Shown: positions 19,500-36,710 of the stretch, piece by piece | Layout: each line of letters starts with the position of its first letter | Numbering within the stretch: the stretch's first letter is position 1 | Sequence record: OR545507.1 | Direction: 5' to 3' (one strand) | Length of the DNA: 64,000 bases | Position numbers and translations under genes: made by a program | Notes under the pieces: model-generated | Seen by the model: only the letters and a program-made list of their open reading frames with translations | Told to the model about the DNA's origin: nothing | The model's database searches: none

Positions 19500-19582
19500 G
19501 ATTTTATTCCTTATTGTATTGGGGAGAACTATTCTCCCCTTGATGTAAACTATTATACAGTACTGATATACTTTGTCAATAC

Positions 19583-19928: not shown

Positions 19929-20012
19929 AGATACACTTCCGCACCCTATGGGTCAGTGAGTTATCTCTCAATGAATATATAATAGCAAAGGGACTGACCG
20001 GAGTCAATCCCT
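19929..20012 (-). repeat. promoter-CCCANNGGGTGC element B
   Basis: same terminator/promoter; GAG-AGATAA-CTC hairpin; ACCCATAGGGTGCGGAAGTGTATCT. Confidence 0.8.
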
Positions 20013-20025
20013 TTTTTAATCTTTT

Positions 20026-20610: not shown

Positions 20611-20641
20611 TGCATGTTCTCCTTGAGTTAATGAAACTATC

Positions 20642-20884
20642 TTACAGTACTTTACTATCAATGGCAACTACTTTTTTAACATTAACGGCGTGGATCACCT
20701 CCTTAGTGTTTTTAGTACTGAATACTTTCGCCGCCCCATTCACGACCGTGATACGATAGCGACCATTAACATCAACCATATTAATAAAGTCCGGCGTGCT
20801 GAATGGTGTTGTTTTACATTTGAGTACTGTTAACAATTCCACCAGCGATGTAGTTTCTTTGATACGTTTTTCTAAAGTAATCAT
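20642..20884 (-). CDS. hypothetical early protein
   Basis: ORF with TTGACA-N17-TACTAT promoter. Confidence 0.7.
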   Translation of the reverse strand: MITLEKRIKETTSLVELLTVLKCKTTPFSTPDFINMVDVNGRYRITVVNGAAKVFSTKNTKEVIHAVNVKKVVAIDSKVL

Positions 20885-20942
20885 TTTGTTTTTCCCCGTG
20901 TTGGTATGTACATATAGTACTAAAACATTTGAGTACTGTCAA

Positions 20943-21161
20943 TTAGATAATATTATATTTCTTAAAATAAAATGCGTCCTGTGTTGGTTGATACTCAATG
21001 CCATTGCCGTTATTGACTTCAACTAATAAACCTTTGTCAATAAGTTTTTTAATAGTACGATACCCTTGTTGAAAATTGGTAAAATGTGAATCATTACGAA
21101 AGGTATAACCGTGCTTAACTGCTTCATCAATAGTTTTCTTTTCGATTTTAGATAATTTCAT
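20943..21161 (-). CDS. hypothetical early protein
   Basis: start MKLSKIE; promoter duplicated from 20885 region. Confidence 0.7.
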   Translation of the reverse strand: MKLSKIEKKTIDEAVKHGYTFRNDSHFTNFQQGYRTIKKLIDKGLLVEVNNGNGIEYQPTQDAFYFKKYNII

Positions 21162-21214
21162 TTTGTTTCTCCCGTGTTGGTATATGTACATAGTACTAAA
21201 ACATTTGAGTACTG

Positions 21215-21469
21215 TCAACGTGATATTAGTTTTATTTTCTTATTATATTGTTGGTGTTCATATAGGTTTATCTTTCCTGTGTTCTCAATTACTATTCTGT
21301 TGTTAGTGTCCACATCGATTACACGCAGTTTCCCGTTGCTTAACTTCCTTGGTAATAGGTTACCATTAATAAACTCATTAGCAAGCTGTACGGCCTTTGT
21401 GATGATTCTCTTCGGTGCTTTATAGTGTACCCGTAAGATGTTATCTTTATATAGTTGAACCTTAATCAT
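21215..21469 (-). CDS. hypothetical early protein
   Basis: ORF. Confidence 0.65.
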   Translation of the reverse strand: MIKVQLYKDNILRVHYKAPKRIITKAVQLANEFINGNLLPRKLSNGKLRVIDVDTNNRIVIENTGKINLYEHQQYNKKIKLISR

Positions 21470-21486
21470 TTTGTTTGTCCTATAAA

Positions 21487-21509
21487 AAAGGCGGGAACTG
21501 ATCCCGCCG
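21487..21509 (-). terminator. rho-independent terminator
   Basis: GGCGGGA-N-TCCCGCC followed by TTTTT on minus strand. Confidence 0.65.
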
Positions 21510-21530
21510 TGTTGTTAGTACTGCAAGTTA

Positions 21531-21935
21531 TTAGATAACCTGGCGGCGTTTACTGAATACTGTTACACGATTACCCTTACGGTCGTGTCGGATCTCTTTC
21601 TGGTTGCGAATCAGTTCACTTGGACGCTTAAGGTTTGCCAGGTGATCCGCGTGAGTCCATGCGGTGTGGTTTACCTGTACTTTGATATCAGAATCAGCGA
21701 TAAACTCATCTTGTGCGTCAAGTATTGCCGCCAGCATATCCGCTCGTTTTAGTTCTGCTGCTGTCAGTACTGGCTCAGGTGAATTCACAATATCAGAGAT
21801 TTCTTTGAACTGTACGGCCCAGCGTTGACCTTTCGGTGCATCTTTGCCCATGTCTTTAAATGCTGCTCCTTCCTCGCGTGCAACAATACGGGCAGCTTCA
21901 CGGGTAGCGTAGAATTTAGTAATCATGGTATACAT
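21531..21935 (-). CDS. hypothetical early protein (paralogue of 33713)
   Basis: FYATREAARIVAR..FKDMG..RWA..DRKGNRVTV. Confidence 0.75.
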   Translation of the reverse strand: MYTMITKFYATREAARIVAREEGAAFKDMGKDAPKGQRWAVQFKEISDIVNSPEPVLTAAELKRADMLAAILDAQDEFIADSDIKVQVNHTAWTHADHLANLKRPSELIRNQKEIRHDRKGNRVTVFSKRRQVI

Positions 21936-22021
21936 CCTATTAGTTGAGATAGTACTACAAGTTAGAGTCTATTATAAAGTACTATCTGGGCAATGTCAAA
22001 TAGTACTTTAAATGGATTCTA

Positions 22022-22345
22022 TTACATGTCTTTCTTACGTTTTACATCGTAGTATCGAACTGTAATTTCTTTGTTGATCTCTTCCTCGATGCGGTGAATA
22101 ACTTTTTCTTTCGGGTTGAAACCTATAACGGTTTCTTTAATGATCTCCAAGCCCGTGTATTCGCCTTGTGTACCGTAACCGTATGTAAAGGTTTCGTGTC
22201 CCAGGTCTTCCCAGCGGTCGCCAATTAACGCTGACACGTAGCAAGAGTGGTAAGTATTGCCGTTCCGATCAGTCCAGCGATTAACTTTAATGTCAAAGGA
22301 GGTTACAATTTTCAGTTCTACTTTCTGGGTAAGGATCATAGCCAT
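22022..22345 (-). CDS. hypothetical early protein (paralogue of 28140)
   Basis: RWTDRNGNTYHSC..FTYGY..VKRKKDM. Confidence 0.75.
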   Translation of the reverse strand: MAMILTQKVELKIVTSFDIKVNRWTDRNGNTYHSCYVSALIGDRWEDLGHETFTYGYGTQGEYTGLEIIKETVIGFNPKEKVIHRIEEEINKEITVRYYDVKRKKDM

Positions 22346-22432
22346 TTTTATTTCTCTCTCTTTGTTAGGAGGGGAACCATTCCCCTCGCTTGATGTAAAC
22401 TATTATACAGTACTAAGATACTTTGTCAATAC

Positions 22433-22615
22433 TTATTTTTTGGAAAGTTTACGCATTAATTCTACGCTTTCTTGTGAACGTTTTGCTACCTGGCAAGCTG
22501 TATGGGCAGTAAACATTTTTGTATAGTCTGACGCTTTGCCACCAAACCGAGCGGCACGTTCACGGGCACTTGGAACTAATACTATTTCTTTCTTGCAGAT
22601 AGTGCACTTAGCCAT
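22433..22615 (-). CDS. small Cys/His-containing protein
   Basis: CxxC...HxxC; start MAKC. Confidence 0.7.
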   Translation of the reverse strand: MAKCTICKKEIVLVPSARERAARFGGKASDYTKMFTAHTACQVAKRSQESVELMRKLSKK

Positions 22616-22703
22616 TTTTATTTCTCTCTCTTTGTTAGGAGGGGAACCGTTTCCCCTCACTTGATGTAAACTATTATACAGTACTAAGATACTTTATCAA
22701 TAC

Positions 22704-22979
22704 TTAAGTATTGTAAATGTCGTGAATAGTGATAAAGTTTTTACGACCGTAAACCTGCAAATCAATATCAATGTAGTGCTTATCTAGTACATCCTCGACG
22801 CTTAACGCGGTGTCGTGGATATCTTCGTAGAATTGAGGATCTACAATCTTGCTTAAGTCATCCGGCGTTAACTTATCGTTAAGCCATTGAACCGCCTGGA
22901 TATCTGCTTCACGTTTCCAGTCTTCCAGGTTAGTAGTCAGTACTTGTTCGATTTCGTTAGCTGTCAGTAGAATCCGCAT
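22704..22979 (-). CDS. hypothetical early protein
   Basis: ORF with own promoter. Confidence 0.7.
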   Translation of the reverse strand: MRILLTANEIEQVLTTNLEDWKREADIQAVQWLNDKLTPDDLSKIVDPQFYEDIHDTALSVEDVLDKHYIDIDLQVYGRKNFITIHDIYNT

Positions 22980-23048
22980 TTTTATGTTTCCTTATCAGTG
23001 GTTGATGTAAGTATTATACTCGTTTACTTTCTATTGTCAAACTATTTT

Positions 23049-23126
23049 ATCAGGGGAGTTTTTCGTATGTCTTACTCCTGGACTACTTAACAGGGTTACT
23101 TATTTCGTTCCCCGTCCTGATGTAAA
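23049..23126 (-). ncRNA. candidate structured small RNA, copy 1
   Basis: consensus promoter, no ATG, near-identical copy at 33037, hairpins. Confidence 0.5.
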
Positions 23127-23202
23127 ACATTATACTTGATTCTAAGTACAATGCAAGTACTTTTTTAAAAATAGTTTTCAGTACTAGCCACCAGCAAACA
23201 AT

Positions 23203-23283
23203 AGATACATTTATGCACCCTGTGGGCTGATTTGTTTCTATGCGTATATAATAGCAAAGGGACTGACCGGAGTCAATCCCTTT
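23203..23283 (-). repeat. promoter-CCCANNGGGTGC element C
   Basis: same terminator/promoter; GCCCACAGGGTGCATAAATGTATCT. Confidence 0.8.
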
Positions 23284-23720
23284 TTCAAATATTTTTAAAC
23301 TTCTTTCGGGTTGCGATAGGTGATAGCGTTCGGGTACATTTGTTTAATGTTATTCCATGCCTGGTTAACATTATAACCACTTGAGCGAATCAGTTGGTTA
23401 CTACCGACACCTTGAAACACTACTTCGAATAAGAATTCTTTCATGCTTTCACCTCGCTATCTGCTTTACCTTTACGCCAGGACATTACTAATTGTTCGCG
23501 TTGCCATAAGTCGAGTGATACAAAAAGTTTTGCGGTATCACTTTTAGGATACTCGCCAGTAGTACCTAACCGATAAAACAGATCTTTCAGTACTGATAAT
23601 TCTACTTGAATCATTTTATTACTCCTGATTGCGTTAATACTTCTACTATTGCATGAATGATCATAAGTACAGCTAACACAATAATCATCGGATTCATTTG
23701 CATAAGCTGTACTCCTTATA

Positions 23721-23933
23721 TTAATCTTTCAGCCAATGATCTTGAATGAATTTTTCACCGTATCCCTGTTTCATGGATTCTAACAGGCGTTCGCGGTGAG
23801 CGGCGGCATATTGCTCAGTACTATGCGTTACGCCAGGCTGATAACGTGATACCCCATCCGGTCCGATGTATTGTACATCCCACGGTTTTTCGTTAGTATC
23901 AGACCATTTACGAACGATTAGTTGACCTTGCAT
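23721..23933 (-). CDS. hypothetical early protein
   Basis: ORF behind promoter-stem-loop. Confidence 0.7.
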   Translation of the reverse strand: MQGQLIVRKWSDTNEKPWDVQYIGPDGVSRYQPGVTHSTEQYAAAHRERLLESMKQGYGEKFIQDHWLKD

Positions 23934-24016
23934 TTTTCTTTCCTCTCAGTGGGGAGAATCATTTCTCCCCTTCATGTAACTTATTATACAGTACTAGATT
24001 ATCTTGTCAATAGTTT

Positions 24017-24340
24017 TTATTCACCTTGTTTGAATTTAGTTTTCTCCATTGATTCCATGATTGCAACCAATACGCTGTGGATCTCGCTTAACGCGGAATC
24101 ACTGAAAGCATTAATGAATAGTCGATCATTCTCGCGAATATTTTTAATGTACTTTTCAGCAGTAGTTGCGAATTCATTCAACGGTAGATCAAATGCTTTA
24201 TCCCATGATGGATGGCGTAATTGTAACAGTACTGGATTATCACGATCACCAGGGGAAAACGTACCAGTGATGAAACATACGCCCGGAATACTTTCGAACT
24301 GGCAACGGACTTCCTTTGTGATAGTAGTATGAATGTACAT
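24017..24340 (-). CDS. hypothetical early protein
   Basis: ORF with GAGG RBS. Confidence 0.7.
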   Translation of the reverse strand: MYIHTTITKEVRCQFESIPGVCFITGTFSPGDRDNPVLLQLRHPSWDKAFDLPLNEFATTAEKYIKNIRENDRLFINAFSDSALSEIHSVLVAIMESMEKTKFKQGE

Positions 24341-24367
24341 TTATTGTTATCCTCTATTAAATTAATA

Positions 24368-24562
24368 TTACAGTTTATGAATCAATTCTTTATCTAAGCG
24401 ATAGCGTACATTATTAATAGTAACGGCATTGTTTTTAATGCTACGCTGTACAGGTCCACCAGCAATAACAAATGTTGCTTTATTACCCCGAACAATGATA
24501 GCACTTCCAGGATTACCGAAATCATCTTGTACTAAAATACTTGATAAGTTTTCCATTTTCAT
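24368..24562 (-). CDS. hypothetical early protein
   Basis: ORF behind promoter-stem-loop. Confidence 0.7.
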   Translation of the reverse strand: MKMENLSSILVQDDFGNPGSAIIVRGNKATFVIAGGPVQRSIKNNAVTINNVRYRLDKELIHKL

Positions 24563-24637
24563 TTCCTCTTAGTAGGGGAAGATGTTTCCCCTTGATGTAA
24601 GTACTATAACACTACTGGATAGTACTGTCAATACTTT

Positions 24638-24895
24638 TTATCTCATAGATCTATGCCAACAATTACGCGGGGGACGTTTAAAAGTACTATCATGATCCTC
24701 CTGGCAAGTTATGCAGTACTTACATCCCTTAACAGCCTGGCGGCGATTCTCAGGGATTTTATCGCCACAGTCGAGGCAATGTATCAGTGATTCTATTTGT
24801 GCGTTAATTTGCTTTCTAGCGTGGTTTACGGCGGCCTGAATCACTGCGTTAATCTCGTCTTGTTCGGCCCCGTCTTTCGCGAATCCTACAGCCAT
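24638..24895 (-). CDS. TraR/DksA C4-type zinc finger protein (YbiI-like)
   Basis: MAVGFAKDGAEQDEI...CLDCGDKIPENRRQAVKGCKYCITCQE. Confidence 0.9.
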   Translation of the reverse strand: MAVGFAKDGAEQDEINAVIQAAVNHARKQINAQIESLIHCLDCGDKIPENRRQAVKGCKYCITCQEDHDSTFKRPPRNCWHRSMR

Positions 24896-25092
24896 TATTT
24901 TAACCTTTTTCTATCATTAATTAATGCTTTCAGTACTATACTAATAACTTGCAATGATTCATCAATGACTATAAAATTATTTTCTTTCATTAGATGATAG
25001 TTACCATTGATATTATATTCTAACGAGTACTGTTTACGTTTAATTTTTGATAATGTTTCTATTTGTTTTTGTACTGATTTCATGCTAATCAT
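24895..25092 (-). CDS. hypothetical protein
   Basis: ORF abutting TraR gene. Confidence 0.6.
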   Translation of the reverse strand: MISMKSVQKQIETLSKIKRKQYSLEYNINGNYHLMKENNFIVIDESLQVISIVLKALINDRKRLK

Positions 25093-25713
25093 TGTTAAAC
25101 GTCCTGTAACGCATTCTAACGAGATAAACGGTTTAGTACTGGCATTGTATAGGGTAATGAATTAAAGCCCACCAGCGTTAACCAGTGGGCTATAATCTTA
25201 CATCTTGCGGATAATCTTAACAGTATCTTTCACCGATTTACCGTCTTGCTGGCATTGCTCGATCATTGCGTATTGTTCTGCGGTCAGATCCTCGCCAGTT
25301 TTTGCCAGTACTGCGTCGATGAATGAATCCAGTGCGATCATTTTATTTCTCTCTTAGGTTAAGTTAACTACTGTTTATAAAACTTATTATACAGTACTAT
25401 CAAACGTTGTCAATATATTTAATAGTACTGGTAATATATTTTAGCGGTAATCGTCGTATGCTTTATTCACCTGGCGAATGTAACTTTCAAAGGCTTCGTC
25501 TACCGTTTCATACTCCCGAACATAATCACCATAGGAAACTACATACATACCTTTTTGATCTTCAAACGTCATGATGATAGAATCCAGACCAACGATTTCA
25601 GTTTTTGCGATGATAGCCATTTTTTTAATTCCTTAGTAGTGTAGTTGATAAAACTTATTATGCCAGTACTATCAATCATTGTCAATAGCTTTGATAGTAC
25701 TGTGATAATATTT

Positions 25714-25926
25714 TTAGTTAATGATAGTCAGTGTAAAATTGTAATCACCACAGCGATATAGCACGTTATTCCCAAATGTTCCAACTAATCGCACATCACA
25801 CAAAACGCCGGTTTTTTCTTTTACTTCCTTGATACTTGTAACTCCTGTAATATCTTTATTAAAGTATTCATGATCTGAAAATAAAACTTGTTTTGCATTT
25901 TTTAATTTCGACCGGATATTAGCCAT
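25714..25926 (-). CDS. hypothetical early protein
   Basis: ORF behind promoter-stem-loop. Confidence 0.7.
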   Translation of the reverse strand: MANIRSKLKNAKQVLFSDHEYFNKDITGVTSIKEVKEKTGVLCDVRLVGTFGNNVLYRCGDYNFTLTIIN

Positions 25927-26021
25927 TTTGTTTTCTCTCTGTTAGTGGGGAGAAGTTTTTCTCCCCTTGATGTAAACTATTATACAGTACTATAATCTAT
26001 TGTCAAACTATTTTTTTTATA

Positions 26022-26363
26022 TTATTCGAAATCTTCTGGACCGGACTGATAATCATCTTCACCGTATGCACTTTCTAACTTCTCGCCAGTGTGGTCATCA
26101 GTTAGTGAGTCATCCTCATAGTTCACGTCTACGCCAGTGATGTAAAACTGGCTATCGTCTGGATCATTGAAATTAATTTTCTGTATGTTTACAATAACTG
26201 TATTGATGCCCAGGACACCGCCATCAGCCGTTACAAAGTACTGATATTTTTCACAACCGCCTGAATTGAAACCGTAATTAATTTCGGCCCGACCATCATT
26301 TAAACGCAGTGCCTGAGCGATGATTTCATTTTCAAAGTTAGATTGAGCAATTGAGATAGTCAT
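26022..26363 (-). CDS. conserved acidic phage hypothetical protein
   Basis: YFVTADGGVL...VDVNYED...ESAYGE; motif recalled from other phages. Confidence 0.75.
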   Translation of the reverse strand: MTISIAQSNFENEIIAQALRLNDGRAEINYGFNSGGCEKYQYFVTADGGVLGINTVIVNIQKINFNDPDDSQFYITGVDVNYEDDSLTDDHTGEKLESAYGEDDYQSGPEDFE

Positions 26364-26485
26364 GATTTGTTTCCTTATTACCAGGGGAAACCGTTTCCCC
26401 TTTCGATGTAAAACATTATACGCTTATTGAGATAGTTTGCAAGTACTTTTTAAAAATAGTTTTCAGTACTCAAACATTATACAAT

Positions 26486-26572
26486 AGATACACTCCTGCA
26501 CCCTGTGGGCTAGTGAGCTATCTCTCAATGAATATATAATAGCAAAATGGCTGACCGAAGTCAACCACTTTT
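26486..26572 (-). repeat. promoter-CCCANNGGGTGC element D
   Basis: GTGGTTGAC-TTCG-GTCAGCCAT hairpin/promoter; GAG-AGATAG-CTC; GCCCACAGGGTGCAGGAGTGTATCT. Confidence 0.8.
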
Positions 26573-27250
26573 TTCATTTATTTTTAGCTTTTAGAATCGC
26601 CGCCTTTCGTGTCATTCCTTGTTTGATGTACTCCTTTACTTTCGCTTTTTTAGCGTTTACCTTGTCTGCTTTCGTTTTAGGAGTACTGTAAATTATACCG
26701 TTAGGATTCATTTAAATCACCATAAAGAATAGATAGGTTACTAACAACGCCGCGATCAATGCACCGACCAGGGCCGAACTATAGTAAGCTAATGTTTTCA
26801 TTTTTTAGCCTGAAAATAATGTTTAATTTGTGCGGCGGTCAATGCACAATTACGCAGGAAGTTTTCTGTATAACTGCGGCGAGTACTGAAAGAGAATTGA
26901 CCTTTGCCGTTGCCGATAGTAACATCAAACCGAGCGTTGTATTGTTTCATTTTGATTCTCCTTGTATCAGGGGAGAACCATTTCCCCCCCCTCTATGTAA
27001 ACAATTATACAGTACTGGAAACTAATTGCAAGTACTATTTTTTAGATTTACGCAAACTTTCTACCATCTCAGGAGTAAGGCCCGGCGGGTAGGAAACCAC
27101 TTCATCCACAAAACGCAAAGGGAATACCCCAGCGAAAGGTGAACGTGCTTTCTTGTTAGTACTCTTTTTTGATGCTTTCATTTCATATTCCTTAATTAGT
27201 GGGGAGAATCATTTCTCCCCTTCATGTAAAACATTATACAGTACTGAAAA

Positions 27251-27460
27251 CTAATTGCAAGTACTATTTGAAAGTAAATGCTCATACGCTGCATTAACTA
27301 CGTTTTCAATAACCGACTGTACAGAAAGATCCCCCACGTCCCGGCTATAGTAGAAATCGCTTACAGTGGTGTCATCGTATGCAAATACTTTACCAGGTAC
27401 GGCATCAATCACATACATATTAACCTTTAAGATGTCGATCTTATCCTGTACAGTAAGCAT
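27251..27460 (-). CDS. hypothetical early protein
   Basis: ORF. Confidence 0.65.
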   Translation of the reverse strand: MLTVQDKIDILKVNMYVIDAVPGKVFAYDDTTVSDFYYSRDVGDLSVQSVIENVVNAAYEHLLSNSTCN

Positions 27461-27465
27461 ATTAA

Positions 27466-27738
27466 TTAACCTTTTAAGTACTGGCTTAAGTAGTCTTGTT
27501 GATCTTCGGTGATTGCAGCCATCTTCCCTAGTACTGGATTGATGATATAATCCCCTGTAACGTCCTGTAACGCATTCTCAGGCGGTTTAACGGCTGGGGT
27601 AGCCATAGCCATTGCCTGGACTTGTTCGACGCTGTAACGCTCATAAAGGCGGCATTCTTCCGGTGTTAACATAGCATCAGTACGCTTCATCGGTTTAATG
27701 ATGCTTTCGATCTCATTCAGTACTTGATTAACGTTCAT
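27466..27738 (-). CDS. hypothetical early protein
   Basis: ORF. Confidence 0.7.
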   Translation of the reverse strand: MNVNQVLNEIESIIKPMKRTDAMLTPEECRLYERYSVEQVQAMAMATPAVKPPENALQDVTGDYIINPVLGKMAAITEDQQDYLSQYLKG

Positions 27739-27789
27739 GGTATAATCCCCAATATAAGCGGCCTGAATCGACCGCTAACGATGTTTTGA

Positions 27790-28059
27790 TTAATAGGTGT
27801 ATGGTTGACGTTCAAACAATGATTGCACGTTGTACGCCCCACTAATGGGCTTTGCTGGTAAATCAATTTTATATTGTTCACGCTTAAAGATAATAAAACG
27901 GCAATTGTTTTTTACATCAAAATTGATTGAACGTTCCAGGAGTTTTCCATCGTGTACAAATACAAGATAACCGCTTGCTACTTGTTTTGTAGTACTGGTT
28001 GCAACCATAGACCGACGAACATGCGTACCTGCATCGATTAAAGTACTGATATTTTTCAT
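27790..28059 (-). CDS. hypothetical early protein
   Basis: ORF with GAGG RBS. Confidence 0.7.
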   Translation of the reverse strand: MKNISTLIDAGTHVRRSMVATSTTKQVASGYLVFVHDGKLLERSINFDVKNNCRFIIFKREQYKIDLPAKPISGAYNVQSLFERQPYTY

Positions 28060-28139
28060 TATACGATCCTCTTAAGTTAATTTAATTTCTTTCCCCTATG
28101 CAGACACTATATCAAAGTATCTGCATAAAGTAAAGCTAA

Positions 28140-28463
28140 TTAAAGATCTTTTTTGCGTTTAACATTCTGTACAGTACAATGCAACGGGATATTAAGATCA
28201 TTGCACACACGAGTAAGGGAGGTTTCATCAGTATTAAGCCCGTCTACTGATTCCTTTAAGAGAGATAACGCCGTTTGTTGATATGCATCTTCATAGCCAT
28301 AAGTAAATGATTCAACCGCCAGATCATTCAAACCGTTATCCAGTTCAACGCTTACATGACAAGAATGATAAGTATTGCCATATGAATCAGTCCAACGTTT
28401 ACCGTCAACATTGATTGCACGGATTGCAGCCAGGGAAACGGTGTTAATGATAGTTTTAGCCAT
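28140..28463 (-). CDS. hypothetical early protein (paralogue of 22022)
   Basis: RWTDSYGNTYHSC..FTYGY..VKRKKDL. Confidence 0.75.
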   Translation of the reverse strand: MAKTIINTVSLAAIRAINVDGKRWTDSYGNTYHSCHVSVELDNGLNDLAVESFTYGYEDAYQQTALSLLKESVDGLNTDETSLTRVCNDLNIPLHCTVQNVKRKKDL

Positions 28464-28782
28464 TTTTGTATTCCTTAAATTAATATGTTGTCTTGATAAA
28501 ATCTATTATGCCAGTACTATCAAACTATGTCAATAGTACTGTGATAATATTTTTACTTACTTTTTGCTTTCTTTGCTGCTTCCACCTGGTCGGCCCATTC
28601 TTTACCCCATACTTGTAAATTATAATGGTACTGGCAAAGAGCAACGCCCCGCTTTAAACCCGTAATAGATTTCTGACCACATTGACAAGTTTTCATTTTA
28701 GTTTCCTTGTAGTGGGGAGAACCATTTCTCCCCTTGATGTAATGTATTATACTTTATTCGATTTACTTTGCAAGTACTTTTT

Positions 28783-29010
28783 TTAATTTAATTCATCCAG
28801 GCAAAGGATACGCTCAACGCCCAAATCAGTTAAACTAATCGACGGCACTTGATAGGTTTCAATGTATGCTACACTTGCCCACTGACCGAACTCATTAACG
28901 GCCCAGGTATTCATTGCATTTTGCAATTCCGCACCTTCCTTGTTGGTAATTACAGCAACAGTAGAAGAATTACCAGTAGTACCAGATACGCGAGTGATTA
29001 CGATAGCCAT
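28783..29010 (-). CDS. hypothetical early protein
   Basis: ORF with own promoter. Confidence 0.7.
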   Translation of the reverse strand: MAIVITRVSGTTGNSSTVAVITNKEGAELQNAMNTWAVNEFGQWASVAYIETYQVPSISLTDLGVERILCLDELN

Positions 29011-29445
29011 TTTTTAATTCCTATTCAGTAGTTGATGTATGTATTATGTCAGTACTTAAAACTATTGTCAAACTATTTTTTAAAGTTTATCAATGATTGA
29101 TGCCGTTTCATTGATAGTCTTGCCGTGTTTTGCACACGCGATAACTGCTTTAAATTCCTTTGATGACCAATCTTTCTTGCTGCATACTGACATTACTTGT
29201 AAAGTAAAACAATCCAGTTCATAAGTATTCATCTTTAAATCCTCAGTTAGTTAAGGTGTCTCGCCTTGATGTAATTAATTATACGCTAATCTCTTAATCG
29301 TGCAAGTACTTTTTATTACTTTTTGCAAAATACTTTAAACGCTCTCAATCGCATTCTAACGACCTTAACTCCACCAGCTAGGGCGATGTATCAGATAATC
29401 AGTTTAATGCGTTAGGCGGTGCTAGTGGACTGGAATACTATAGAC

Positions 29446-29488
29446 ACAAAAAAGCCCACTGTTTAAGGTGGGCTAGTGATTCAGTACT
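29446..29488 (-). terminator. terminator, 43-bp direct repeat copy 1
   Basis: AGCCCAC-CTTAAACA-GTGGGCT-TTTTT; identical copy at 30182. Confidence 0.75.
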
Positions 29489-29495
29489 TTAATTT

Positions 29496-29978
29496 TTATG
29501 CTTCAACTTTGCGATGAGCTTCGATCCATTCCTCGCGAGTCATACCGCTTTCTTTGATAGCGTCCAGTACTACCGCAATGCAGTTACCGCGTACAGGAAT
29601 CAAATGTTCTTCCCCGTTATCAAGTACTACCGCTACACGTTCCTGAATCCATTTTTTAGGCTTAGATTCCGGCTTATCTTCACCATACTTAACCGCCAGG
29701 GCTTTATGTGCCATTTCCACAACCACTTCCAGATCCAATCCAGACACTGCCGCCTGAATACTTTCAATTGTTGCTTGTAGTTCTGCTTCACGGGCTTTTT
29801 TCTGTTCTTCCAGTTCTGCTACCTTTTTGGCTTGCAGTTCTTTCGCAGTACTGTACGCAATGTTAAAATTGTTGCGTACCGCTTTCATGGTATCGCTATC
29901 CAGTTCAGCCAGGATTTCTGCCGCTACGTTAGTTTCATTTGCTACCAGTGCTTTGATGAATGATTTTACATTAGCCAT
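29496..29978 (-). CDS. H-NS/StpA-like protein (divergent)
   Basis: coiled-coil N-half; C-terminal VLDNGEEHLIPVRGNCIAVVLDAIKESGMTREEW aligns by eye with H-NS [34 protein letters not shown]. Confidence 0.55.
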   Translation of the reverse strand: MANVKSFIKALVANETNVAAEILAELDSDTMKAVRNNFNIAYSTAKELQAKKVAELEEQKKAREAELQATIESIQAAVSGLDLEVVVEMAHKALAVKYGEDKPESKPKKWIQERVAVVLDNGEEHLIPVRGNCIAVVLDAIKESGMTREEWIEAHRKVEA

Positions 29979-30181
29979 TTTATAAATCCTCAATTAAAGT
30001 TTAGTTTACGTTAGATAGTGTATCAAAGTTTTCTCGACGTGTCCAGTTTTTCGTTCGACTTACTGGCGGTCTACTTAGTGCTCCCCGTCTTGATGTAATA
30101 CATTCTACGCTTTTCTGTGGTAATGTCAACTACTTTTTTAAAACTATTTTTAAAGTATCTCAGTACTACGATACTACAAAA

Positions 30182-30224
30182 ACAAAAAAGCCCACTGTTT
30201 AAGGTGGGCTAGTGATTCAGTACT
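30182..30224 (-). terminator. terminator, 43-bp direct repeat copy 2
   Basis: identical to 29446-29488. Confidence 0.75.
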
Positions 30225-30227
30225 AGA

Positions 30228-30527
30228 TTATAAACAGTTAATTACTCCGGTGTGCGTTACTTTCTCAGTATCCATAACCGTGACCGATCCACGCTTAGTA
30301 CTGGCATCATAATAAATTGTGGTGCTACCGTTTTCGTCTTCTTCATGGAACGGGCCGTTTTTAAATGCTTCCGGCTGGATCTCTAAATCCTTTAATACAA
30401 TCTCGCCAGTTCTTTCATCGGTCATTGCAACAGTGCACTGAATGAATTTTTCATTACTTACATCTAATGACGCATTAACAGCGAAAGAGGAAACAGATAA
30501 AGCCAGGGCGATGATTGCAATTTTCAT
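30228..30527 (-). CDS. predicted exported protein
   Basis: Sec-type signal MKIAIIALALSVSSFAVNA. Confidence 0.7.
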   Translation of the reverse strand: MKIAIIALALSVSSFAVNASLDVSNEKFIQCTVAMTDERTGEIVLKDLEIQPEAFKNGPFHEEDENGSTTIYYDASTKRGSVTVMDTEKVTHTGVINCL

Positions 30528-30611
30528 TTGATTATCCTTAGTTACCAGGGGGAACCGCTCCCCCTTGCTATGTAAAATATTATACAGTACTAAAAACTAA
30601 TTGCAAGTACT

Positions 30612-30848
30612 TTATGATTTTTTATAAAACATTTCGGCAGTGATATTTTTACCCGTTGGCTGTACTTTATCCAGAATTTTTTGATGCCCTGGCCGTCCAA
30701 ATGAATATGATCCGTAAACCGTAAACCAGTAGTTACCCTCAGTGTTTACATGTACAGCACAATAGGGAACGCCCCGCGATTCATCACTAGTAAAGTGTGC
30801 TACCGTTCCCGTTACATTCGAAGTCGTTGATTTGATTTGTTCAAGCAT
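30612..30848 (-). CDS. hypothetical early protein
   Basis: ORF behind promoter-stem-loop. Confidence 0.7.
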   Translation of the reverse strand: MLEQIKSTTSNVTGTVAHFTSDESRGVPYCAVHVNTEGNYWFTVYGSYSFGRPGHQKILDKVQPTGKNITAEMFYKKS

Positions 30849-30955
30849 TTTCTTATTCCTTAGTTACCAGGGGAACCGCTCCCCTATGCAAAACATTATA
30901 CGCGTTTAAAAACTAATAGCAAGTATTTTAATAAAAAGTATTTGGAAAATAATTG

Positions 30956-31030
30956 TTGACAAGTGCATCCAGTACTGGCATAATTACTACATCAAGACGA
31001 AACAGTCACTAACCCACCGGGTGCATAGAT
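30956..31030 (+). repeat. promoter-CCCANNGGGTGC element F
   Basis: TTGACA-N17-CATAAT; GAC-GAAACA-GTC hairpin; ACCCACCGGGTGCA. Confidence 0.8.
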
Positions 31031-31062
31031 CCGTCTATTAAATGATTCAGTACTGAAAAAGT

Positions 31063-31090
31063 AACGGGGAGTTATTATCTCCCCGCGTTG
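31063..31090. terminator. hairpin between convergent transcripts
   Basis: CGGGGAG-TTATTAT-CTCCCCG. Confidence 0.65.
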
Positions 31091-31312
31091 TTATTTTGTA
31101 AGGTATAAACAGAAGTCACCTTTATTTGCTACGCCGCCAGTGTAACGCGATGAATAGTTAGAAATATCTTGTACTTCTGCTATTACCAGTGTATCATCAT
31201 TCATTTCGTCGCAGAAGCAAACGGCTGGATCTTTTACGCCGATATTGTCGGCATGTTCCCGCATAGATTTAACCAGTGCTTCCAGTTGAGAAAGAGTAGT
31301 GATATTAGCCAT
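31091..31312 (-). CDS. hypothetical early protein
   Basis: start MANITT after promoter-stem-loop. Confidence 0.7.
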   Translation of the reverse strand: MANITTLSQLEALVKSMREHADNIGVKDPAVCFCDEMNDDTLVIAEVQDISNYSSRYTGGVANKGDFCLYLTK

Positions 31313-31398
31313 TGTATTTTCCTCATTACCAGGGAGAACCATTTCTCCCCTCTATGTAAACTATTATACAGTACTGAAAACTAATTGCAAGTACTTTT

Positions 31399-31602
31399 TT
31401 AATTTAATTGCTTTAAAACATACTCAAAGACACCACGCACATCATTGATCATCGCCTGGCGGTTAGCAGGTAACGCATCAGGATCGCCACTATCCCAGGC
31501 ATTGATAAAACTCCCCAAATCATGATAGATTTTATTCTGTAAGCCGATTAACTGTAATTCTTTTTCTTCAAGCTCTTTGATGCGGTCGATTAAATCACTC
31601 AT
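31399..31602 (-). CDS. hypothetical early protein
   Basis: start MSDLIDR. Confidence 0.65.
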   Translation of the reverse strand: MSDLIDRIKELEEKELQLIGLQNKIYHDLGSFINAWDSGDPDALPANRQAMINDVRGVFEYVLKQLN

Positions 31603-31619
31603 TAGATAATCCTCAGTAC

Positions 31620-31904
31620 TTAACTGTAAGATCCGCAACGGTCGCAGTAGTGCCCGTCCTCGTCATCGTCAACGAATTGACCGACGAAATGATCTACTTT
31701 CGCTTTCAGGTTATTATAATCGTTTTCTACTTCATTTAAACGCTTCTGGTAGTATTCCAGTGCTTTAAGATATGCCGCATCAGCAGTTTTCTCCTGCATA
31801 GCTAAATTCATGCCACGCGTTTCATCGTACAGCCAAAAACCATCGGTGCACTGGCTAATAGATAATGACTTGCTTAGTACTGTATAGTTAATTACTTTAC
31901 CCAT
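31620..31904 (-). CDS. hypothetical early protein
   Basis: ORF; C-terminal CxxC. Confidence 0.7.
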   Translation of the reverse strand: MGKVINYTVLSKSLSISQCTDGFWLYDETRGMNLAMQEKTADAAYLKALEYYQKRLNEVENDYNNLKAKVDHFVGQFVDDDEDGHYCDRCGSYS

Positions 31905-31996
31905 TAGATAATCCTCAGTAAAGGCGGGAACTATTCCCCGCCTCGATATAAAGTATTATACGTTAATCTAACTACAATGCAAGTACTTTTTAAATT

Positions 31997-32263
31997 TTAT
32001 AATCCTTTTACTGCATCAGGTGCGACTACTCCATCAATGTATTGAACATCGTTTTCAACTTCACGGGCGGCATCATTCAGCAGATCAAAATTAAATTCCA
32101 TTTCTTCCAGATCATCGAAATCAGGCTCATAACCATTAATTGTTGAATAAGTCCAAGTACCTTTTTCATAAGTTACGACACTTACATCAGGGAAGAAATC
32201 TTGCACATGATCCATCGCATCCCGAACCAATTGATGTGCAGTTGTGATATTTAAAGTTTTCAT
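31997..32263 (-). CDS. acidic hypothetical early protein
   Basis: ORF behind promoter-stem-loop. Confidence 0.7.
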   Translation of the reverse strand: MKTLNITTAHQLVRDAMDHVQDFFPDVSVVTYEKGTWTYSTINGYEPDFDDLEEMEFNFDLLNDAAREVENDVQYIDGVVAPDAVKGL

Positions 32264-32356
32264 TTTGTTGCCCTTTTAGTGTGAGCGGGGAACCACTCCC
32301 CGCCTCGATGTAAAGTATTATACGCTTTTAAACTTAGTTTGCAAGTACTTTTTAAA

Positions 32357-32968
32357 TTAATATGCGATTGATTCTACTACGTCATCAATAACATTGAATT
32401 GATATTCGTTACCCTCAATCAGTGCCGTAATGTTTTCAGTAGTGAATTGATCCTCATATGCATTCTCTAAATCACGGTACAACTTGCGGGATAATTCACG
32501 AATAGTTTCAGTGAGTAGTTCCTCAAGCTCATTAACTAACGTTTCTTGTTTTGCGGTTAAATCAGTGTAAGCCGATTCAATGTACCCGCTTACAGTATTC
32601 TCATGCGAGTAGTGGGAGTGAGAACGCTTTACACTCATCGCCAAATCATCTTCATTCAGCAGGTGACGGATTGAGCGATACTTAGTTAATGCTCTTACCT
32701 TGCGTAAAAACTTCACTGCGTCAACGTGGTCAGTACTGATTGATGCACCGTCACCCTGGGACCAAAAACCACTGAATTGTATTTCAGCTTCATTAATGCC
32801 ATATTCCGGTAGTACTGTTTCTTTATAGTATTCAATTTCACTTTCAGAAAAATAATTGTCGTTTGAGTTTTTTTCACGTTCCCGAACCAGTTCGATAGCT
32901 GACGTTTTTTGTTCTGCGTTCAATTCAGAAAAATCCATAACGAAAGTAGTAGTAGTGATAGTTTTCAT
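32357..32968 (-). CDS. SGFWSQGDG-motif protein (family often labelled antitoxin-like in mobile elements)
   Basis: DFSELNAEQK...IQFSGFWSQGDGAS; family label recalled, not verified. Confidence 0.6.
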   Translation of the reverse strand: MKTITTTTFVMDFSELNAEQKTSAIELVREREKNSNDNYFSESEIEYYKETVLPEYGINEAEIQFSGFWSQGDGASISTDHVDAVKFLRKVRALTKYRSIRHLLNEDDLAMSVKRSHSHYSHENTVSGYIESAYTDLTAKQETLVNELEELLTETIRELSRKLYRDLENAYEDQFTTENITALIEGNEYQFNVIDDVVESIAY

Positions 32969-33036
32969 TTTGTAACCCTCATTCAGTAGTTGATGTAAGT
33001 ATTATACGCTTTTAAAAACATTTGTCAAACTATTTT

Positions 33037-33116
33037 ATCAGGGGAGTTTTTCGTGTGCCTTACTCCTGGGCTACTTAACGGGAAGTTACTTATTTCGTTC
33101 CCCGTCCTGATGTAAA
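33037..33116 (-). ncRNA. candidate structured small RNA, copy 2
   Basis: as 23049; stem variants keep pairing. Confidence 0.5.
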
Positions 33117-33191
33117 ACATTATACGCCTTTAAACATAGTTTGCAAGTACTTTTTAAAAATAGTTTTCAGTACTGAATATTTAAAAAAGTA

Positions 33192-33255
33192 TTGACAGCA
33201 TTATCAAGTACTGGCATAATATACCCCATGACAACAGCTAACCCACCGGGTGCAC
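33192..33255 (+). repeat. promoter-CCCANNGGGTGC element G
   Basis: TTGACA-N17-CATAAT; ACCCACCGGGTGCA; converges on E. Confidence 0.8.
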
Positions 33256-33286
33256 AATTGTAACTATACTAAACTACTTTTTCTAT

Positions 33287-33364
33287 AGATACACTCCCGC
33301 ACCCTATGGGCTACGGCTTATCTGCCAATGAATACATTATGCCAGTACTGACAAAATAAGTCAA
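33287..33364 (-). repeat. promoter-CCCANNGGGTGC element E
   Basis: TTGACT-N17-CATAAT; GGC-AGATAA-GCC; GCCCATAGGGTGCGGGAGTGTATCT. Confidence 0.8.
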
Positions 33365-33394
33365 TACCGGCAATTGTAAAGATTTGTAAACTGC

Positions 33395-33625
33395 TTATAC
33401 TGCAATCGCGTCCAGGCTATAATAATAATAAGTGCCGTATTGGTGTACTTTATTACCTTTTATTTCAGTACTGAATGAATCCGAACGGTTTGCATATGAT
33501 GTTAATTTAAAGTACTTTGATTTGCTGATACGTTGCCATACACCGCAGATCCGCTGTAAGTAAGTAGTTTTATTCGTGGTAGTATCTTTTACAGTTTTAA
33601 CTTCAGTCATATACATATTAGTCAT
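33395..33625 (-). CDS. hypothetical early protein
   Basis: ORF behind promoter-stem-loop. Confidence 0.7.
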   Translation of the reverse strand: MTNMYMTEVKTVKDTTTNKTTYLQRICGVWQRISKSKYFKLTSYANRSDSFSTEIKGNKVHQYGTYYYYSLDAIAV

Positions 33626-33712
33626 TTTTATTACTCCAGGTTATAGGCGGGAAGAGTTCCCGCTCTCGATGTAAAACATTATACGCCATTAAACATAGTT
33701 TGCAAGTACTTT

Positions 33713-33979
33713 TTATTCAAGTACTGCAATCTTTTTAGTACGGTACACGGTCACGCGGTTGCCCTTTCGGTCGAGCTTTATTTCTACCACTCGACGCGAT
33801 ACACTATCAGGACTTTTCAACGCCGCTAACCAGTACTGTAATGATCTGGCGGTACTACGCTTTATAATGGCCCAACGTTTACCACGTTCCGATTGTACGC
33901 CCATATCTTTAAACGTTGCCCCGTCCTGGCGTGCGGCGATCCGAGCTTGTTCACGCGTCGCAAAATACTTAATATTCAT
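33713..33979 (-). CDS. hypothetical early protein (paralogue of 21531)
   Basis: YFATREQARIAAR..FKDMG..RWA..DRKGNRVTV. Confidence 0.75.
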   Translation of the reverse strand: MNIKYFATREQARIAARQDGATFKDMGVQSERGKRWAIIKRSTARSLQYWLAALKSPDSVSRRVVEIKLDRKGNRVTVYRTKKIAVLE

Positions 33980-34064
33980 GCTGTTGCCCTTATCGTTGGT
34001 GTATGAATAAAACACTATTATAAAGTACTATCGCAAAAAATGATAGTACTTTAAATAAATTCTA

Positions 34065-34304
34065 TTACATTCCAACCATTGCAGCACGGATCGCAGTAGT
34101 GCTATATTTGAATCCGTCCGGCGTTTTATCTTGTCCAGTCTGTTCTAAAAATAACATCATATGACGGGCCGCATCATTACGATTAGTATTGGCGGCAATA
34201 AAGTCCTGGGCCAACCGGTATAATGATTCATCGTTATTAATCCAAAGGCTTACATTCCAATGAGTTTTGTTTTTGTGACCTAAGAACATTTTTGATTTAG
34301 CCAT
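34065..34304 (-). CDS. conserved phage hypothetical protein
   Basis: GHKNKTHWNVSLWINNDE...TPDG..YS...IRAAM; motif recalled from other phages. Confidence 0.75.
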   Translation of the reverse strand: MAKSKMFLGHKNKTHWNVSLWINNDESLYRLAQDFIAANTNRNDAARHMMLFLEQTGQDKTPDGFKYSTTAIRAAMVGM

Positions 34305-34397
34305 TTTTTTAATCCTCTTATATAGTGGGGAACTATTCCCCACCTGATGTAAAACATTATACGCTTTTAAACATAGTTTGCAAGTACTTTATTAAAC

Positions 34398-34760
34398 TTA
34401 TTCGTAAATTTTGCCACTGTCAGCCCATACCAGGAAACGAGGCATATTATCCCATGCATCTTGTTTTAAATTTAAACCGTGTAATACTTCTGTACTTTCC
34501 ATTCCTGGTACTGGTTTACTATACACCGCGAAATTTTCGCCCATATACTGATAAACCATCGTCAAATCACTGGCGATCATCTTATGGATCATCGCATCAA
34601 GCATCACGGTAGCGGCGTATTGTTCACGCTTAAGCGGCAACATTGTAATAAGTTCCCGATAAGCTGAAATGTGAATTTTTACCGTTTCAGCCGGAAGACC
34701 TTTCATCTCTTCACGGAAGTTGACCAGGTTAGAAATAATTTTATTGATTTGGGTCGCCAT
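34398..34760 (-). CDS. hypothetical early protein (first gene of the early run)
   Basis: start MATQINK after promoter-stem-loop. Confidence 0.7.
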   Translation of the reverse strand: MATQINKIISNLVNFREEMKGLPAETVKIHISAYRELITMLPLKREQYAATVMLDAMIHKMIASDLTMVYQYMGENFAVYSKPVPGMESTEVLHGLNLKQDAWDNMPRFLVWADSGKIYE

Positions 34761-35079
34761 CGTATTAATCTCTTTTAAAGTGTAGCGGGAAGTGTTCCCG
34801 CTCTCGATGTAAAACATTATACGCCTTTAAACATAGTTTGCAAGTACTTTCTACATGTACTTTTAAAATAGTTTTCTTTCTATATAGGGGAACTATCATT
34901 CAGTACTATTATTCAGTACTGAATCAACCAAATCACTACTACACCCCATAAAACGGCCTCAGACGCATTCTAACGCATTAATACACCTAAGCTATACATT
35001 TGCACCATTCCAATCATTCCAGGGCTTTACGGGCCGTTTAAACGCGTTAAATTATTTTCAATTATTTTGTTTTTAGCTA

Positions 35080-35167
35080 TTGACTCAGTACAGAAAAAGC
35101 GTATAATTACTACATAGACGCGAGAAAGCGGAAACCCCAGAGGGTGCGGAATTACGCCCAAAATTCA
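35080..35167 (+). repeat. promoter-CCCANNGGGTGC element H
   Basis: TTGACT-N16-TATAAT; CGC-GAGAAA-GCG; CCCCAGAGGGTGCGG. Confidence 0.8.
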
Positions 35168-35180
35168 AGATATAAAAAAA

Positions 35181-35262
35181 GGATACACTCCCGCACCCTA
35201 GCAGGTAAACGCACTTTCTCAGTACTGAAATATAGTACCATAGTCCGGCCCAGGATAGCAAG
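35181..35262 (-). repeat. promoter-GGGTGC element I (degenerate left arm)
   Basis: CTAGGGTGCGGGAGTGTATCC; TACTAT -10 upstream; converges on H. Confidence 0.7.
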
Positions 35263-35295
35263 CAAATTAATTAAAACTTTTTTGCTTCCAGGGTA

Positions 35296-35382
35296 TTGCT
35301 TTATTTTTTCAGTACTGTATAATAGTTCCATCAAGTCGAGAAAGACTCAAGCCCACCGGGTGCATAGTTACGCCCAAAATTC
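35296..35382 (+). repeat. promoter-CCCANNGGGTGC element J
   Basis: TTGCTT-N16-TATAAT; GTC-GAGAAA-GAC; GCCCACCGGGTGCA. Confidence 0.8.
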
Positions 35383-36710
35383 AGTACTGAAAAAATTTTT
35401 AAAAATATCCGTCCAGGCCGTTGACATTGCCCCCAGTTTATAAGATAATGATTCCAGATTCAGAAAAATCTAACTCCAGATACTGCGGGGAAACTATCCC
35501 CACGCGGTAGGGGAACTATTGGAAAAAACAAAATAAAATTTTGATTTAGCCGTCTATACTTCCAGACGTGTAACCATCTAGCCGTTTAGCCGTCCAAACG
35601 TCTAGCCATCCAGAAATCTAGCCGTCTAGATGGATAGCCATCTTTACTTCCAGACTTCTGGAGGGCTAGACATATCTACGCCCAAAATCCATCCAGGGTA
35701 ACTACACCCAAAATCCGTCAGTACTATACCATAGATCTATCTTTTGAAAGGGAGTATTCAGTACTGCCATCATAGCCCTCACTATGTTACCCTAGGAGGA
35801 TGAAGACCATCATGTAGTACTGAATACTGTTAGAGGGAATCCACCAGCACAAGCTGGTGGTATAATGCTTTAGATTAAAATCAGTACTGACACCATTCTG
35901 TTAATATCAGTACTGTTATTACGATTTTCATATGAGGTTCAAAAAGATGTACCACCACAGGAGGAACTATCTTTTCTGTACTGTCTCACGACAGGAGGTA
36001 GAGTAAATGAATTGTTCGCAGCAACTCATCACCCCTTGAAGCTATGTAGAACATTATACAGTACTGAATCATAATGTCAATAGCTTTCTTTCATTATTCA
36101 GTACTGATATTCTTGAGAACTACCCGACTACAAACATCATTATATCCCACAAATCATAAACGTCCCAACGTAAATTTCAACTTTCGAAGATCCAACTTTT
36201 ATTTCATAGGTACTCCAAAATTTTTAGGATCGAGATTTAGGATGGAGTACTAACCAACTTTTTGCTGGAGCCTCAAGGGGTAATTGAATTTTACCCCGAA
36301 GGGTAAAAGGGTAATTGTAATTAAGGTGAAAGTAATAATTCAGTACTAATCATTGCGTGATTACTTTTGATTACATTTGATGTAATTTGCAAAATGGAAA
36401 AGGAGCTTGGAAACTACAAAGTACGGCAGACTTCCTCTGCCTACTTAGTGGCATATCAGTACTGAATCATTCACACACATTTCCGTGCATTCTTGTCTAT
36501 ACTAATCAGTACTGAATCATATATAATCATTCTGTGATTCTACGGTGCTCATATAAATGTTTATATATGATTACTTATGACTACCTATGATTACGGGGTT
36601 TAGCCTGGGGAGAATCCTAGTGATCGCATTTGTCCAGGCTGAATTTTAACATATGCAACATATGTTAAAGCCTGTATAATGCTTCCACTACGGAGCTTCC
36701 CCTAGCTATA

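Follow-up and report, generated by a model that had tools for sequence, protein, structure and literature searches.

A predicted pseudoknot RNA element behind early promoters of an Escherichia jumbo phage and its homologue in the T7 A1–A2 leader

The window analysed here, a 64,000-nucleotide (nt) stretch of sequence record OR545507.1, carries on its minus strand an early array of small promoter–gene cassettes into which is set, in three copies, a short RNA element free of open reading frames (ORFs); this element is our subject. Over the 401 bp compared around copy 1, the sequence is 100% identical to that of two Escherichia phages, vB_EcoM_G17 and Sharanji, the latter at the same coordinates; both are Asteriusvirus jumbo coliphages of 350–370 kb, and the stretch is present in 43 further related records. 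A unit of the array runs from a near-consensus sigma70 promoter through a short leader hairpin and a ribosome-binding site (RBS) to a small ORF. The hairpins, G-rich/C-rich and of the GGGGAGAA/UUCUCCCC type, lie a few bases into the transcript, beginning about 8 nt downstream of the predicted +1, and have no U-tract; at least 24 repeat copies with promoter and hairpin lie at 16.6–36 kb.

Copies 1 and 2 stand 10 kb apart where an earlier note, made from the sequence alone, had placed them, and both are on the minus strand; the pair is joined by a third, diverged copy that the note had not listed (Table 1). The consensus promoter that it had seen directly upstream of each is predicted by us as well (P1: TTGCAT or TTGCAA, 16 nt, TATAAT), and in both copies a second promoter (P2) follows the element and is itself followed by the RBS and ATG of a small minus-strand gene. 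Positions of +1 are predictions, made from the location of the -10 box and by analogy with T7 A1. In agreement with the claim that the element lacks any ATG, the RNA strand contains no AUG, GUG or UUG, and the only nearby ATG shares bases with the -10 box (TATAATG) and precedes the predicted start. On the opposite, plus strand, a 7-codon micro-ORF (ATG in copy 1, GTG in copy 2, behind GGGGAG) was rejected because it is not conserved in T7 and is antisense to the whole array. Over the element the two copies are about 93% identical, whereas the spacers of their P1 and P2 promoters are almost wholly different and match promoters of other cassettes instead: the P1 module of copy 1 also drives ordinary cassettes at 19857 and 16664, and that of copy 2 recurs at 33678, 34356 and 34816. 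A conserved element amid scrambled spacers indicates that promoters have been exchanged around a conserved cargo.

In minimum free energy (MFE) folds of copies 1 and 2, the three pairings named in the earlier note all appear, namely a closing helix (AUCAGG/CCUGAU), a first arm (ACGGGG/CCCUGU, with UUCCCGU as the partner in copy 2) and a second arm (GGAGU/ACUCC, given there as AGGAGU/ACUCC). Their fold energy z-scores are modest, at -2.1 and -1.7, and the plus strand folds no better than its shuffles. The evidence for a selected structure comes instead from the core, which we define as UAAGUAG followed by a 3-bp helix (S1) interlocked with a 4–6-bp helix (S2, arm 2) and by the loop UAAG-N-C-NN-ACGAAAA; all three window copies have this motif, with the pairs kept in each. 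A covariance model of the core run over the 64 kb gives matches at 23052–23090, 33040–33078 and 30040–30078, all on the minus strand with E ~1e-10, and the next match has E 2.2, E-values of such a home-made model being rough. The core pattern likewise matches the window three times, versus 0 in 100 shuffles.

In an alignment (A3) that covers all lineages with 22 distinct core sequences, 92% of S2 cells are paired and four of the five S2 pairs are altered on both sides (CG/GC, UA/AU), giving versions such as CCUG/CAGG, CUUG/CAAG, CCAG/CUGG and GGAG/CUCC; in a control with the 3' partners shifted by 1–3 columns, at most 46% of cells are paired. Members found only by the model contribute variants of their own, ACUUG/CAAGU in LTH01 and CCAG/CUGG in Munch. 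The strands of S1 are the G-N-C that follows UAAGUA and a G-N'-C within the arm-2 loop, and the middle pair is A-U in 15 sequences, C-G in three and U-A in three, with one mismatch. The U-A and C-G types each occur in jumbo/myovirus-type and T7-like contigs alike, so S1 variants arose more than once. Since the retrieval pattern left the paired positions free, this covariation is no search artefact. In copy 3, which is without arm 1, S1 reads GAC/GUC and S2 CCAGU/ACUGG, and a closing helix is possible between GACG (30086–30089) and CGUC (30036–30039). S1 crosses S2. If both helices form at once, the result would be an H-type pseudoknot whose first loop is a single base and whose last loop is A-rich; otherwise the two would represent alternative states. 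Arm 2 is supported by covariation, as the note's second arm, and as S2 would be part of the pseudoknot; we consider it very probable that the domain is a real, selected RNA structure.

Several points weigh against reading the whole domain in this way. S1 and S2 could be alternative states and not a simultaneous pseudoknot. The retrieval pattern fixed UAAGUAG and the loop words, and hence the invariance of these conserved words, UAAGUAG and UAAG-N-C-NN-ACGAAAA, owes something to the search itself; among members that only the model found there is variation, with AUG or AAG for ACG and GAAAG for GAAAA. The earlier note had held that arm 1 is kept with different sequence, and both pairings do occur in the MFE fold, but variation in this arm consists of one-sided G-C to G-U changes and loop indels only, which is not compensatory. 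The complementary ends of the element are likewise present in the fold, yet the helix AUCAGG/CCUGAU is invariant within the type of copies 1 and 2, and the 5'-flank/tail helices of the other types (GACG/CGUC, GACGG/CCGUC, GCGGC/GUCGC, CGGC/GCCG) are at chance level, shuffled tails matching their length in 25–85% of trials. The closing helix and arm 1 are accordingly plausible but unproven. As a separate observation, an unverified record (L015, CMSTMSU, 406–480) lacks three bases of the 5' S2 strand and one base of the 3' strand through deletion and keeps a 4-bp GAGU/ACUC helix, which may be a real shortened variant or a sequencing error.

Table 1. Positions of the early array, the three element copies and their promoters and genes in the window
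Feature	Position	Strand	Details and basis
Early cassette array	16600..36100	-	>30 units; repeat families D1–D8 and promoter list
Copy 1, P1 promoter	23129..23156	-	TTGCAT-16-TATAAT; promoter list, repeat families
Copy 1, RNA element	23049..23121	-	~73 nt, from predicted +1 (A at 23121)
Copy 1, closing helix	23116-23121 with 23049-23054	-	AUCAGG with CCUGAU; predicted fold
Copy 1, arm 1	23090-23115	-	Predicted fold
Copy 1, predicted pseudoknot core	23055..23089	-	Covariance-model match 55.4 bits, E 3.7e-11; helix covariation
Copy 1, UAAGUAG	23083-23089	-	
Copy 1, S1	23081-23083 with 23069-23071	-	GUC with GAC
Copy 1, S2	23074-23078 with 23055-23059	-	GGAGU with ACUCC
Copy 1, A-rich loop	23060-23068	-	AUACGAAAA
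Copy 1, P2 promoter	23013..23040	-	TTGACA-16-TATAAT; drives 91-aa gene 22704-22979
91-aa gene behind copy 1	22704-22979	-	ATG at 22979; PHROG 14947, no assigned function
Copy 2, P1 promoter	33119..33146	-	TTGCAA-16-TATAAT; promoter list, repeat families
Copy 2, RNA element	33037..33111	-	~75 nt; predicted +1 is A at 33111
Copy 2, predicted pseudoknot core	33043-33077	-	53.8 bits; S1 GCC/GGC versus GUC/GAC in copy 1
Copy 2, P2 promoter	33001..33028	-	TTGACA-16-TATAAT; drives 203-aa gene 32357-32968
203-aa gene behind copy 2	32357-32968	-	ATG at 32968; PHROG 5162, no assigned function
Copy 3, promoter	30102..30129	-	TTGACA-16-TAGAAT; directly downstream of terminator 30189-30210
Copy 3, diverged element	30036..30094	-	Core 30043-30077, 52.7 bits
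160-aa gene led by copy 3	29496-29978	-	PHROG 27871, no assigned function; ends at terminator 29453-29474

A search with copy 3 matched the left ends of T7-like Yersinia phages, and in T7 itself the core lies at nt 551–581, between the E. coli promoters A1 (498) and A2 (626), with the -35 hexamer of A2 directly after it. The T7 A1 RNA starts with a hairpin, and no feature is annotated at the core in the T7 record. Scanning IMG/VR with the pattern gave 32 loci, nearly all in 37–45-kb T7-like genomes or fragments, and in contigs that start at the genome left end the core is within about 1 kb of it; two loci from the first IMG/VR pattern (L005 and L007, 14.5 bits) were discarded as chance matches. 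A T3-type query returned 506 phage records, the hosts including Escherichia, Klebsiella, Salmonella, Yersinia, Enterobacter, Shigella, Citrobacter and Serratia. The type of copies 1 and 2, with both promoters, recurs at 88–93% identity in Justusliebigvirus (muut, EmilieFrey, outra) and Vequintavirinae (A73, W70, A7_1, A5-4), within a similar small-gene array and before different downstream genes. One copy each, between two promoters, is present in Munch-type jumbo phages of Salmonella and Klebsiella and in a jumbo contig of 366 kb, and in fENko-Kae01 the core is inside the annotated direct terminal repeat (DTR). The window copies score 52.7–55.4 bits against the covariance model, versus 47–56 bits for other phage members. 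Conservation in relatives is thereby found, by both covariance-model and query searches, in the T7 group, Vequintavirinae, Justusliebigvirus and jumbo phages.

The element lies on the transcribed strand, no more than about 100 nt from a strong early sigma70-type promoter, in copies 1–3, T7, Munch, LTH01 and the loci L057, L033 and L020; the last two have no adjacent P2. In EmilieFrey, A73 and LTH01, P2 bears a canonical leader hairpin of its own, so the downstream cassette is complete without the element. In L033 (4112–4190) a perfect boxA (CGCUCUUUAACAA) lies 16 nt beyond the predicted pseudoknot, and the same boxA stands after promoter A3 in the T7 locus (L016, 434–446); none was found in the 64-kb jumbo phage window. 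On these comparisons of sequence, we conclude that the jumbo core is homologous to the T7-group A1–A2 RNA, and that it has moved horizontally among virulent phages of enterobacteria belonging to at least five lineages (podoviruses, two subfamilies of myoviruses and two jumbo-phage groups), always behind a strong early host RNA polymerase promoter; the phage and IMG/VR collections searched are biased toward enterobacterial phages. No match to the T7 form or to copy 1 was found in 5,426 complete E. coli genomes. Rfam gave nothing at the gathering score over the whole window; with E up to 10, region 22900–23300 gave only chance-level unrelated families far below their gathering scores, the T7 leader gave nothing and L033 gave chance-level matches only. 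In the published literature we found no function assigned to the T7 A1–A2 RNA, most older subscription papers on T7 being outside the coverage; keywords turned up nothing about the RNA, and words of its sequence led only to articles in which T7 template or guide sequences are printed.

Within the T7 group, the structure can be followed beyond the core. Over 20 sequences four helices have 93% of cells paired, with compensatory changes in 11 of 18 pairs; in a control with displaced 3' partners, no more than 35% of cells are paired. The T7-likes have a 4-bp hairpin just 5' of UAAGUAG, whose loop pairs with 5–6 bases 3' of S2 (mapped in T7 at L016, 153–221). This loop/tail pairing occurs as GUCAA/UUGAC, in which the A2 -35 hexamer takes part as RNA, GAUUAG/CUAAUC, GUCGGU/ACCGAC and GUCAUC/GAUGAC, and three variants (L020, L026 and L044) alter both partners together. 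The tail of the jumbo and myovirus forms, by contrast, seems to be paired with the 5' flank.

The position of the array in the genome bears on when and in what dose the element would be delivered. In the vB_EcoM_G17 record (370,817 bp), each of the three elements is present twice, 350,149 bp apart, a spacing that implies a terminal repeat of 20,668 bp and matches the DTR size published for Sharanji (PMC11895373), in a paper where promoters and RNAs are not discussed. We infer that the promoter–cassette array is the direct terminal repeat, at about 15,778–36,445 of the window, and that the deposited Sharanji record is apparently permuted, so that the repeat begins at about 15.8 kb. All three copies are inside this 20.7-kb repeat, which would amount to six per virion DNA if both repeats are packaged, and terminal-repeat DNA is probably the first to enter the cell.

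We favour, tentatively and at somewhat less than even confidence, the possibility that the element is an abundant early RNA that would bind and titrate a putative host factor or defence protein other than CsrA. This proposal starts from the observed anatomy, homology, covariation and copy number. The standard early sigma70 promoter P1 would transcribe a closed RNA domain of about 73 nt, an autonomous ORF-less module composed of the 5'-terminal closing helix, an ordinary leader-type hairpin (arm 1) and the core, in which the 5-bp S2 and the crossing 3-bp S1 would fold into an H-type pseudoknot with its A-rich loop and the flanking single-stranded UAAGUAG. The complete promoter–gene cassette behind it would keep its own promoter, P2. 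Produced abundantly in the opening minutes of infection, the RNA would be separated from read-through transcripts through processing of its A/U-rich tail, or in the T7 version by the RNase III cut before gene 0.3, and its conserved unpaired nucleotides would then bind and titrate a host factor or defence protein shared among enterobacteria. That the downstream cassette has its own promoter and leader makes P1 plus element look like an independent RNA gene inserted between cassettes, and the genes behind the copies, which belong to three unrelated PHROGs with no Pfam match above threshold and differ again in relatives, indicate that the element is tied to no one gene. Three copies per repeat and A1-type promoter strength argue for a dosage-dependent role in trans, the conserved unpaired words for a specific ligand, and the restriction to virulent phages of enterobacteria for a host partner. 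A bolder version, which we hold to be doubtful, sees in the element an unrecognised, horizontally mobile pseudoknot RNA gene, made among the first host-polymerase transcripts of T7-group and large virulent enterobacterial phages and multi-copy in jumbo terminal repeats, that would neutralise a host factor or anti-phage defence before any phage protein exists.

Other observations count against a trans-acting RNA. The phage small RNA (sRNA) of the earlier note is borne out insofar as the element is structured, ORF-less and behind a promoter, but not as regards a defined 3' end: a scan for terminators in the interval up to the next gene found none, in copies 1 and 2 the tail leads into P2, and a discrete sRNA, which would need processing, is an assumption. 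In copy 3, whose only second promoter is a degenerate P2 (TTGATA-17-TAAACT), and in the IMG/VR fragment L033, a gene simply has the element as its 5' leader, a placement that fits a role in cis as well. Assembled contigs from metatranscriptomes of wastewater and similar samples, aligned over 21000–26900, break at the promoter repeats and carry no information on strand, transcript start or end.

The main rival to titration in trans is a cis-acting leader that alters the transcribing host RNA polymerase so that polymerases started at P1 read further, whether by put-like processive antitermination, by anti-Rho action or as an anti-backtracking 'ratchet' formed just before P2; we consider it rather unlikely. 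The element does head a transcription unit within about 100 nt of a strong early promoter in every case, copies 1 and 3 each follow a terminator, and T7 A1 is the first early promoter. The boxA sequences of L033 and of T7 behind A3 would suit such a role, as would the precedent of the HK022 put RNAs, which likewise have two helices, lie just downstream of early promoters and act in cis. However, transcripts from A2, A3 and P2 lack the element and still traverse the same DNA, the cassettes behind copies 1 and 2 each have their own promoter, the unit of copy 3 stops at a strong terminator after one gene, the window has no boxA, and an anti-backtracking structure alone would not need conserved unpaired nucleotides. 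A simpler role in cis, to which we assign a low probability, is that of a 5'-end stabiliser or insulator, the closed 5' domain shielding read-through mRNA from 5'-end-dependent decay much as the short hairpins of neighbouring cassettes may do. It draws on the closing helix that begins at the predicted +1, on the leader hairpin found at the same place in every other cassette of the array and on the hairpin at the start of the T7 A1 RNA, but it leaves unexplained both the covarying pseudoknot and loop words conserved across five phage lineages and the fact that the downstream gene keeps P2, whose transcripts are without the element.

It is very unlikely that there is no RNA function at all and that the element is a recombination scar between cassettes or a DNA-level, UP-like region of P2. 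The array is mosaic, with promoters clearly swapped among cassettes, and the element has A-tracts on the upstream side of the P2 -35 hexamer; against this, the element is more conserved than the surrounding promoter spacers, it occurs without an adjacent P2 in L033 and L020, and compensatory changes keep two to four helices, which argues against both a scar and a mere upstream region of P2. Least probable of all, and scarcely to be expected, is the compact CsrA sponge that the earlier note had proposed. Copies 1 and 2 do contain CAGGACG and CAGGAG, as it had stated. CsrA binds GGA exposed in loops, and CsrB and CsrC have many GGA motifs (about 9–22), mostly exposed in hairpin loops; each copy here has only two or three, all of them within the closing helix, arm 1 or S2 of the predicted fold, and GGAG sits in S2, the helix supported by covariation. 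Nor is GGA conserved: T7-type cores have it only in a stem, CAGGA is absent from copy-3-type and T7-type cores, and LTH01 has no GGA at all, the conserved words UAAGUAG and UAAG...ACGAAAA being unrelated to it. The CsrB and CsrC models of Rfam gave no match in either search of the window described above. With GGA base-paired and not conserved across the family, the sponge reading is not supported. Type III antitoxin (ToxI-like) pseudoknots and small pseudoknot riboswitches or ribozymes were also considered and set aside, with no Rfam match at E up to 10 and no expression platform downstream.

Set beside known systems, the only true relative of the element, judged by homology, is the unannotated T7-group A1–A2 leader (T7 nt ~530–600), which shares UAAGUAG, the G-N-C/G-N'-C helix S1, a 5-bp S2, the loop UAAG-N-C-NN-ACGAAAA and a location behind a strong early sigma70 promoter, with a second promoter usually following at once; it differs in the 4-bp pre-core hairpin and the pairing of its loop with the tail, where jumbo and myovirus forms appear to pair the 5' flank with the tail. 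The array around the element resembles the PeSL cassettes of T4-like phages, in which repeated near-consensus sigma70 early promoters and a stem-loop flank small ORFans in a plastic region and promoter parts are mosaic between cassettes. In the PeSLs of PST and nt-1, the stem-loop is just upstream of the promoter and acts as a terminator (Arbiol et al. 2010, PMC2839356; Comeau et al. 2014, PMC4122927), whereas the array hairpins here are downstream of the -10 box, within the transcript, and have no U-tract; none of them lies upstream of or overlaps its promoter as a terminator. A promoter with an adjacent stem-loop is found in the array and in P1 with arm 1 but not in the pseudoknot core, and the element is cargo between two promoters, not a cassette boundary.

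By mechanism, the nearest analogues may be protein-sponge RNAs, the leader pseudoknot of gene 32 and the put RNAs of HK022; none of these shares sequence with the element, and the comparison with Rfam was negative. The put RNAs are cis-acting antiterminators with two stem-loops and no pseudoknot; they resemble the element as short multi-helix RNAs just downstream of early promoters in a phage that uses host RNA polymerase, and differ in that the element is predicted to be pseudoknotted, no sequence relation being detected. The mRNA leader pseudoknot of gene 32 in T2 and T4 stands before a single autoregulated gene and has phage gp32 as its ligand. Like the predicted fold here, it lies close to the 5' end of a phage transcript and is a compact H-type pseudoknot whose first loop has one nucleotide. 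It serves as a protein-binding site; the element here is portable, multi-copy and tied to no one gene. With CsrB and CsrC the likeness is that of a non-coding RNA proposed to titrate a protein, the difference being the element's few, stem-bound and unconserved GGA motifs. Compared with a stand-alone bacterial-type sRNA gene, the element has its own predicted promoter but no intrinsic terminator.

Some further features of the region are recorded here in their own right. The minus-strand terminators at 30189–30210 and 29453–29474 are identical 22-nt hairpins (AGCCCACC...GGUGGGCU followed by a U-run) that bracket copy 3 and the 160-aa gene, which look like a portable unit between direct repeats. 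Amid the minus-strand array, good sigma70-like promoters on the plus strand at 30956–30984, 33192–33220, 35080–35107 and 35421–35449 would yield antisense or convergent transcription. A separate repeated ORF-less unit, found at 17173–17275, 19920–20027, 23194–23296, 26477–26571, 33278–33313 and 35172–35207, adjoins copies 1 and 2 on their upstream side and consists of a terminator-like hairpin overlapping a TTGACT-17-TATTAT promoter and then a conserved GCCCAC-N3-GGGUGC word. Outside the array, at 40779–53731, eleven tandem genes have an identical RBS and a common MLPF... N-terminus (repeat families D6, D9 and D14), each preceded by a hairpin terminator and a -10-like box.

T7 is a textbook phage whose A1–A3 promoter region has served in countless transcription experiments, and it would be a surprise if its A1 transcript contained a conserved, covarying pseudoknot fold that has neither annotation nor Rfam family and for which we found no assigned function. 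In the jumbo phage, the element gives meaning to what is otherwise an ORF-less 'gap' in the early array. Taken together, its exchange among phage lineages, its placement at early promoters and its three copies in the terminal repeat point to an overlooked step at the RNA level, which would concern host take-over or the control of early transcription.

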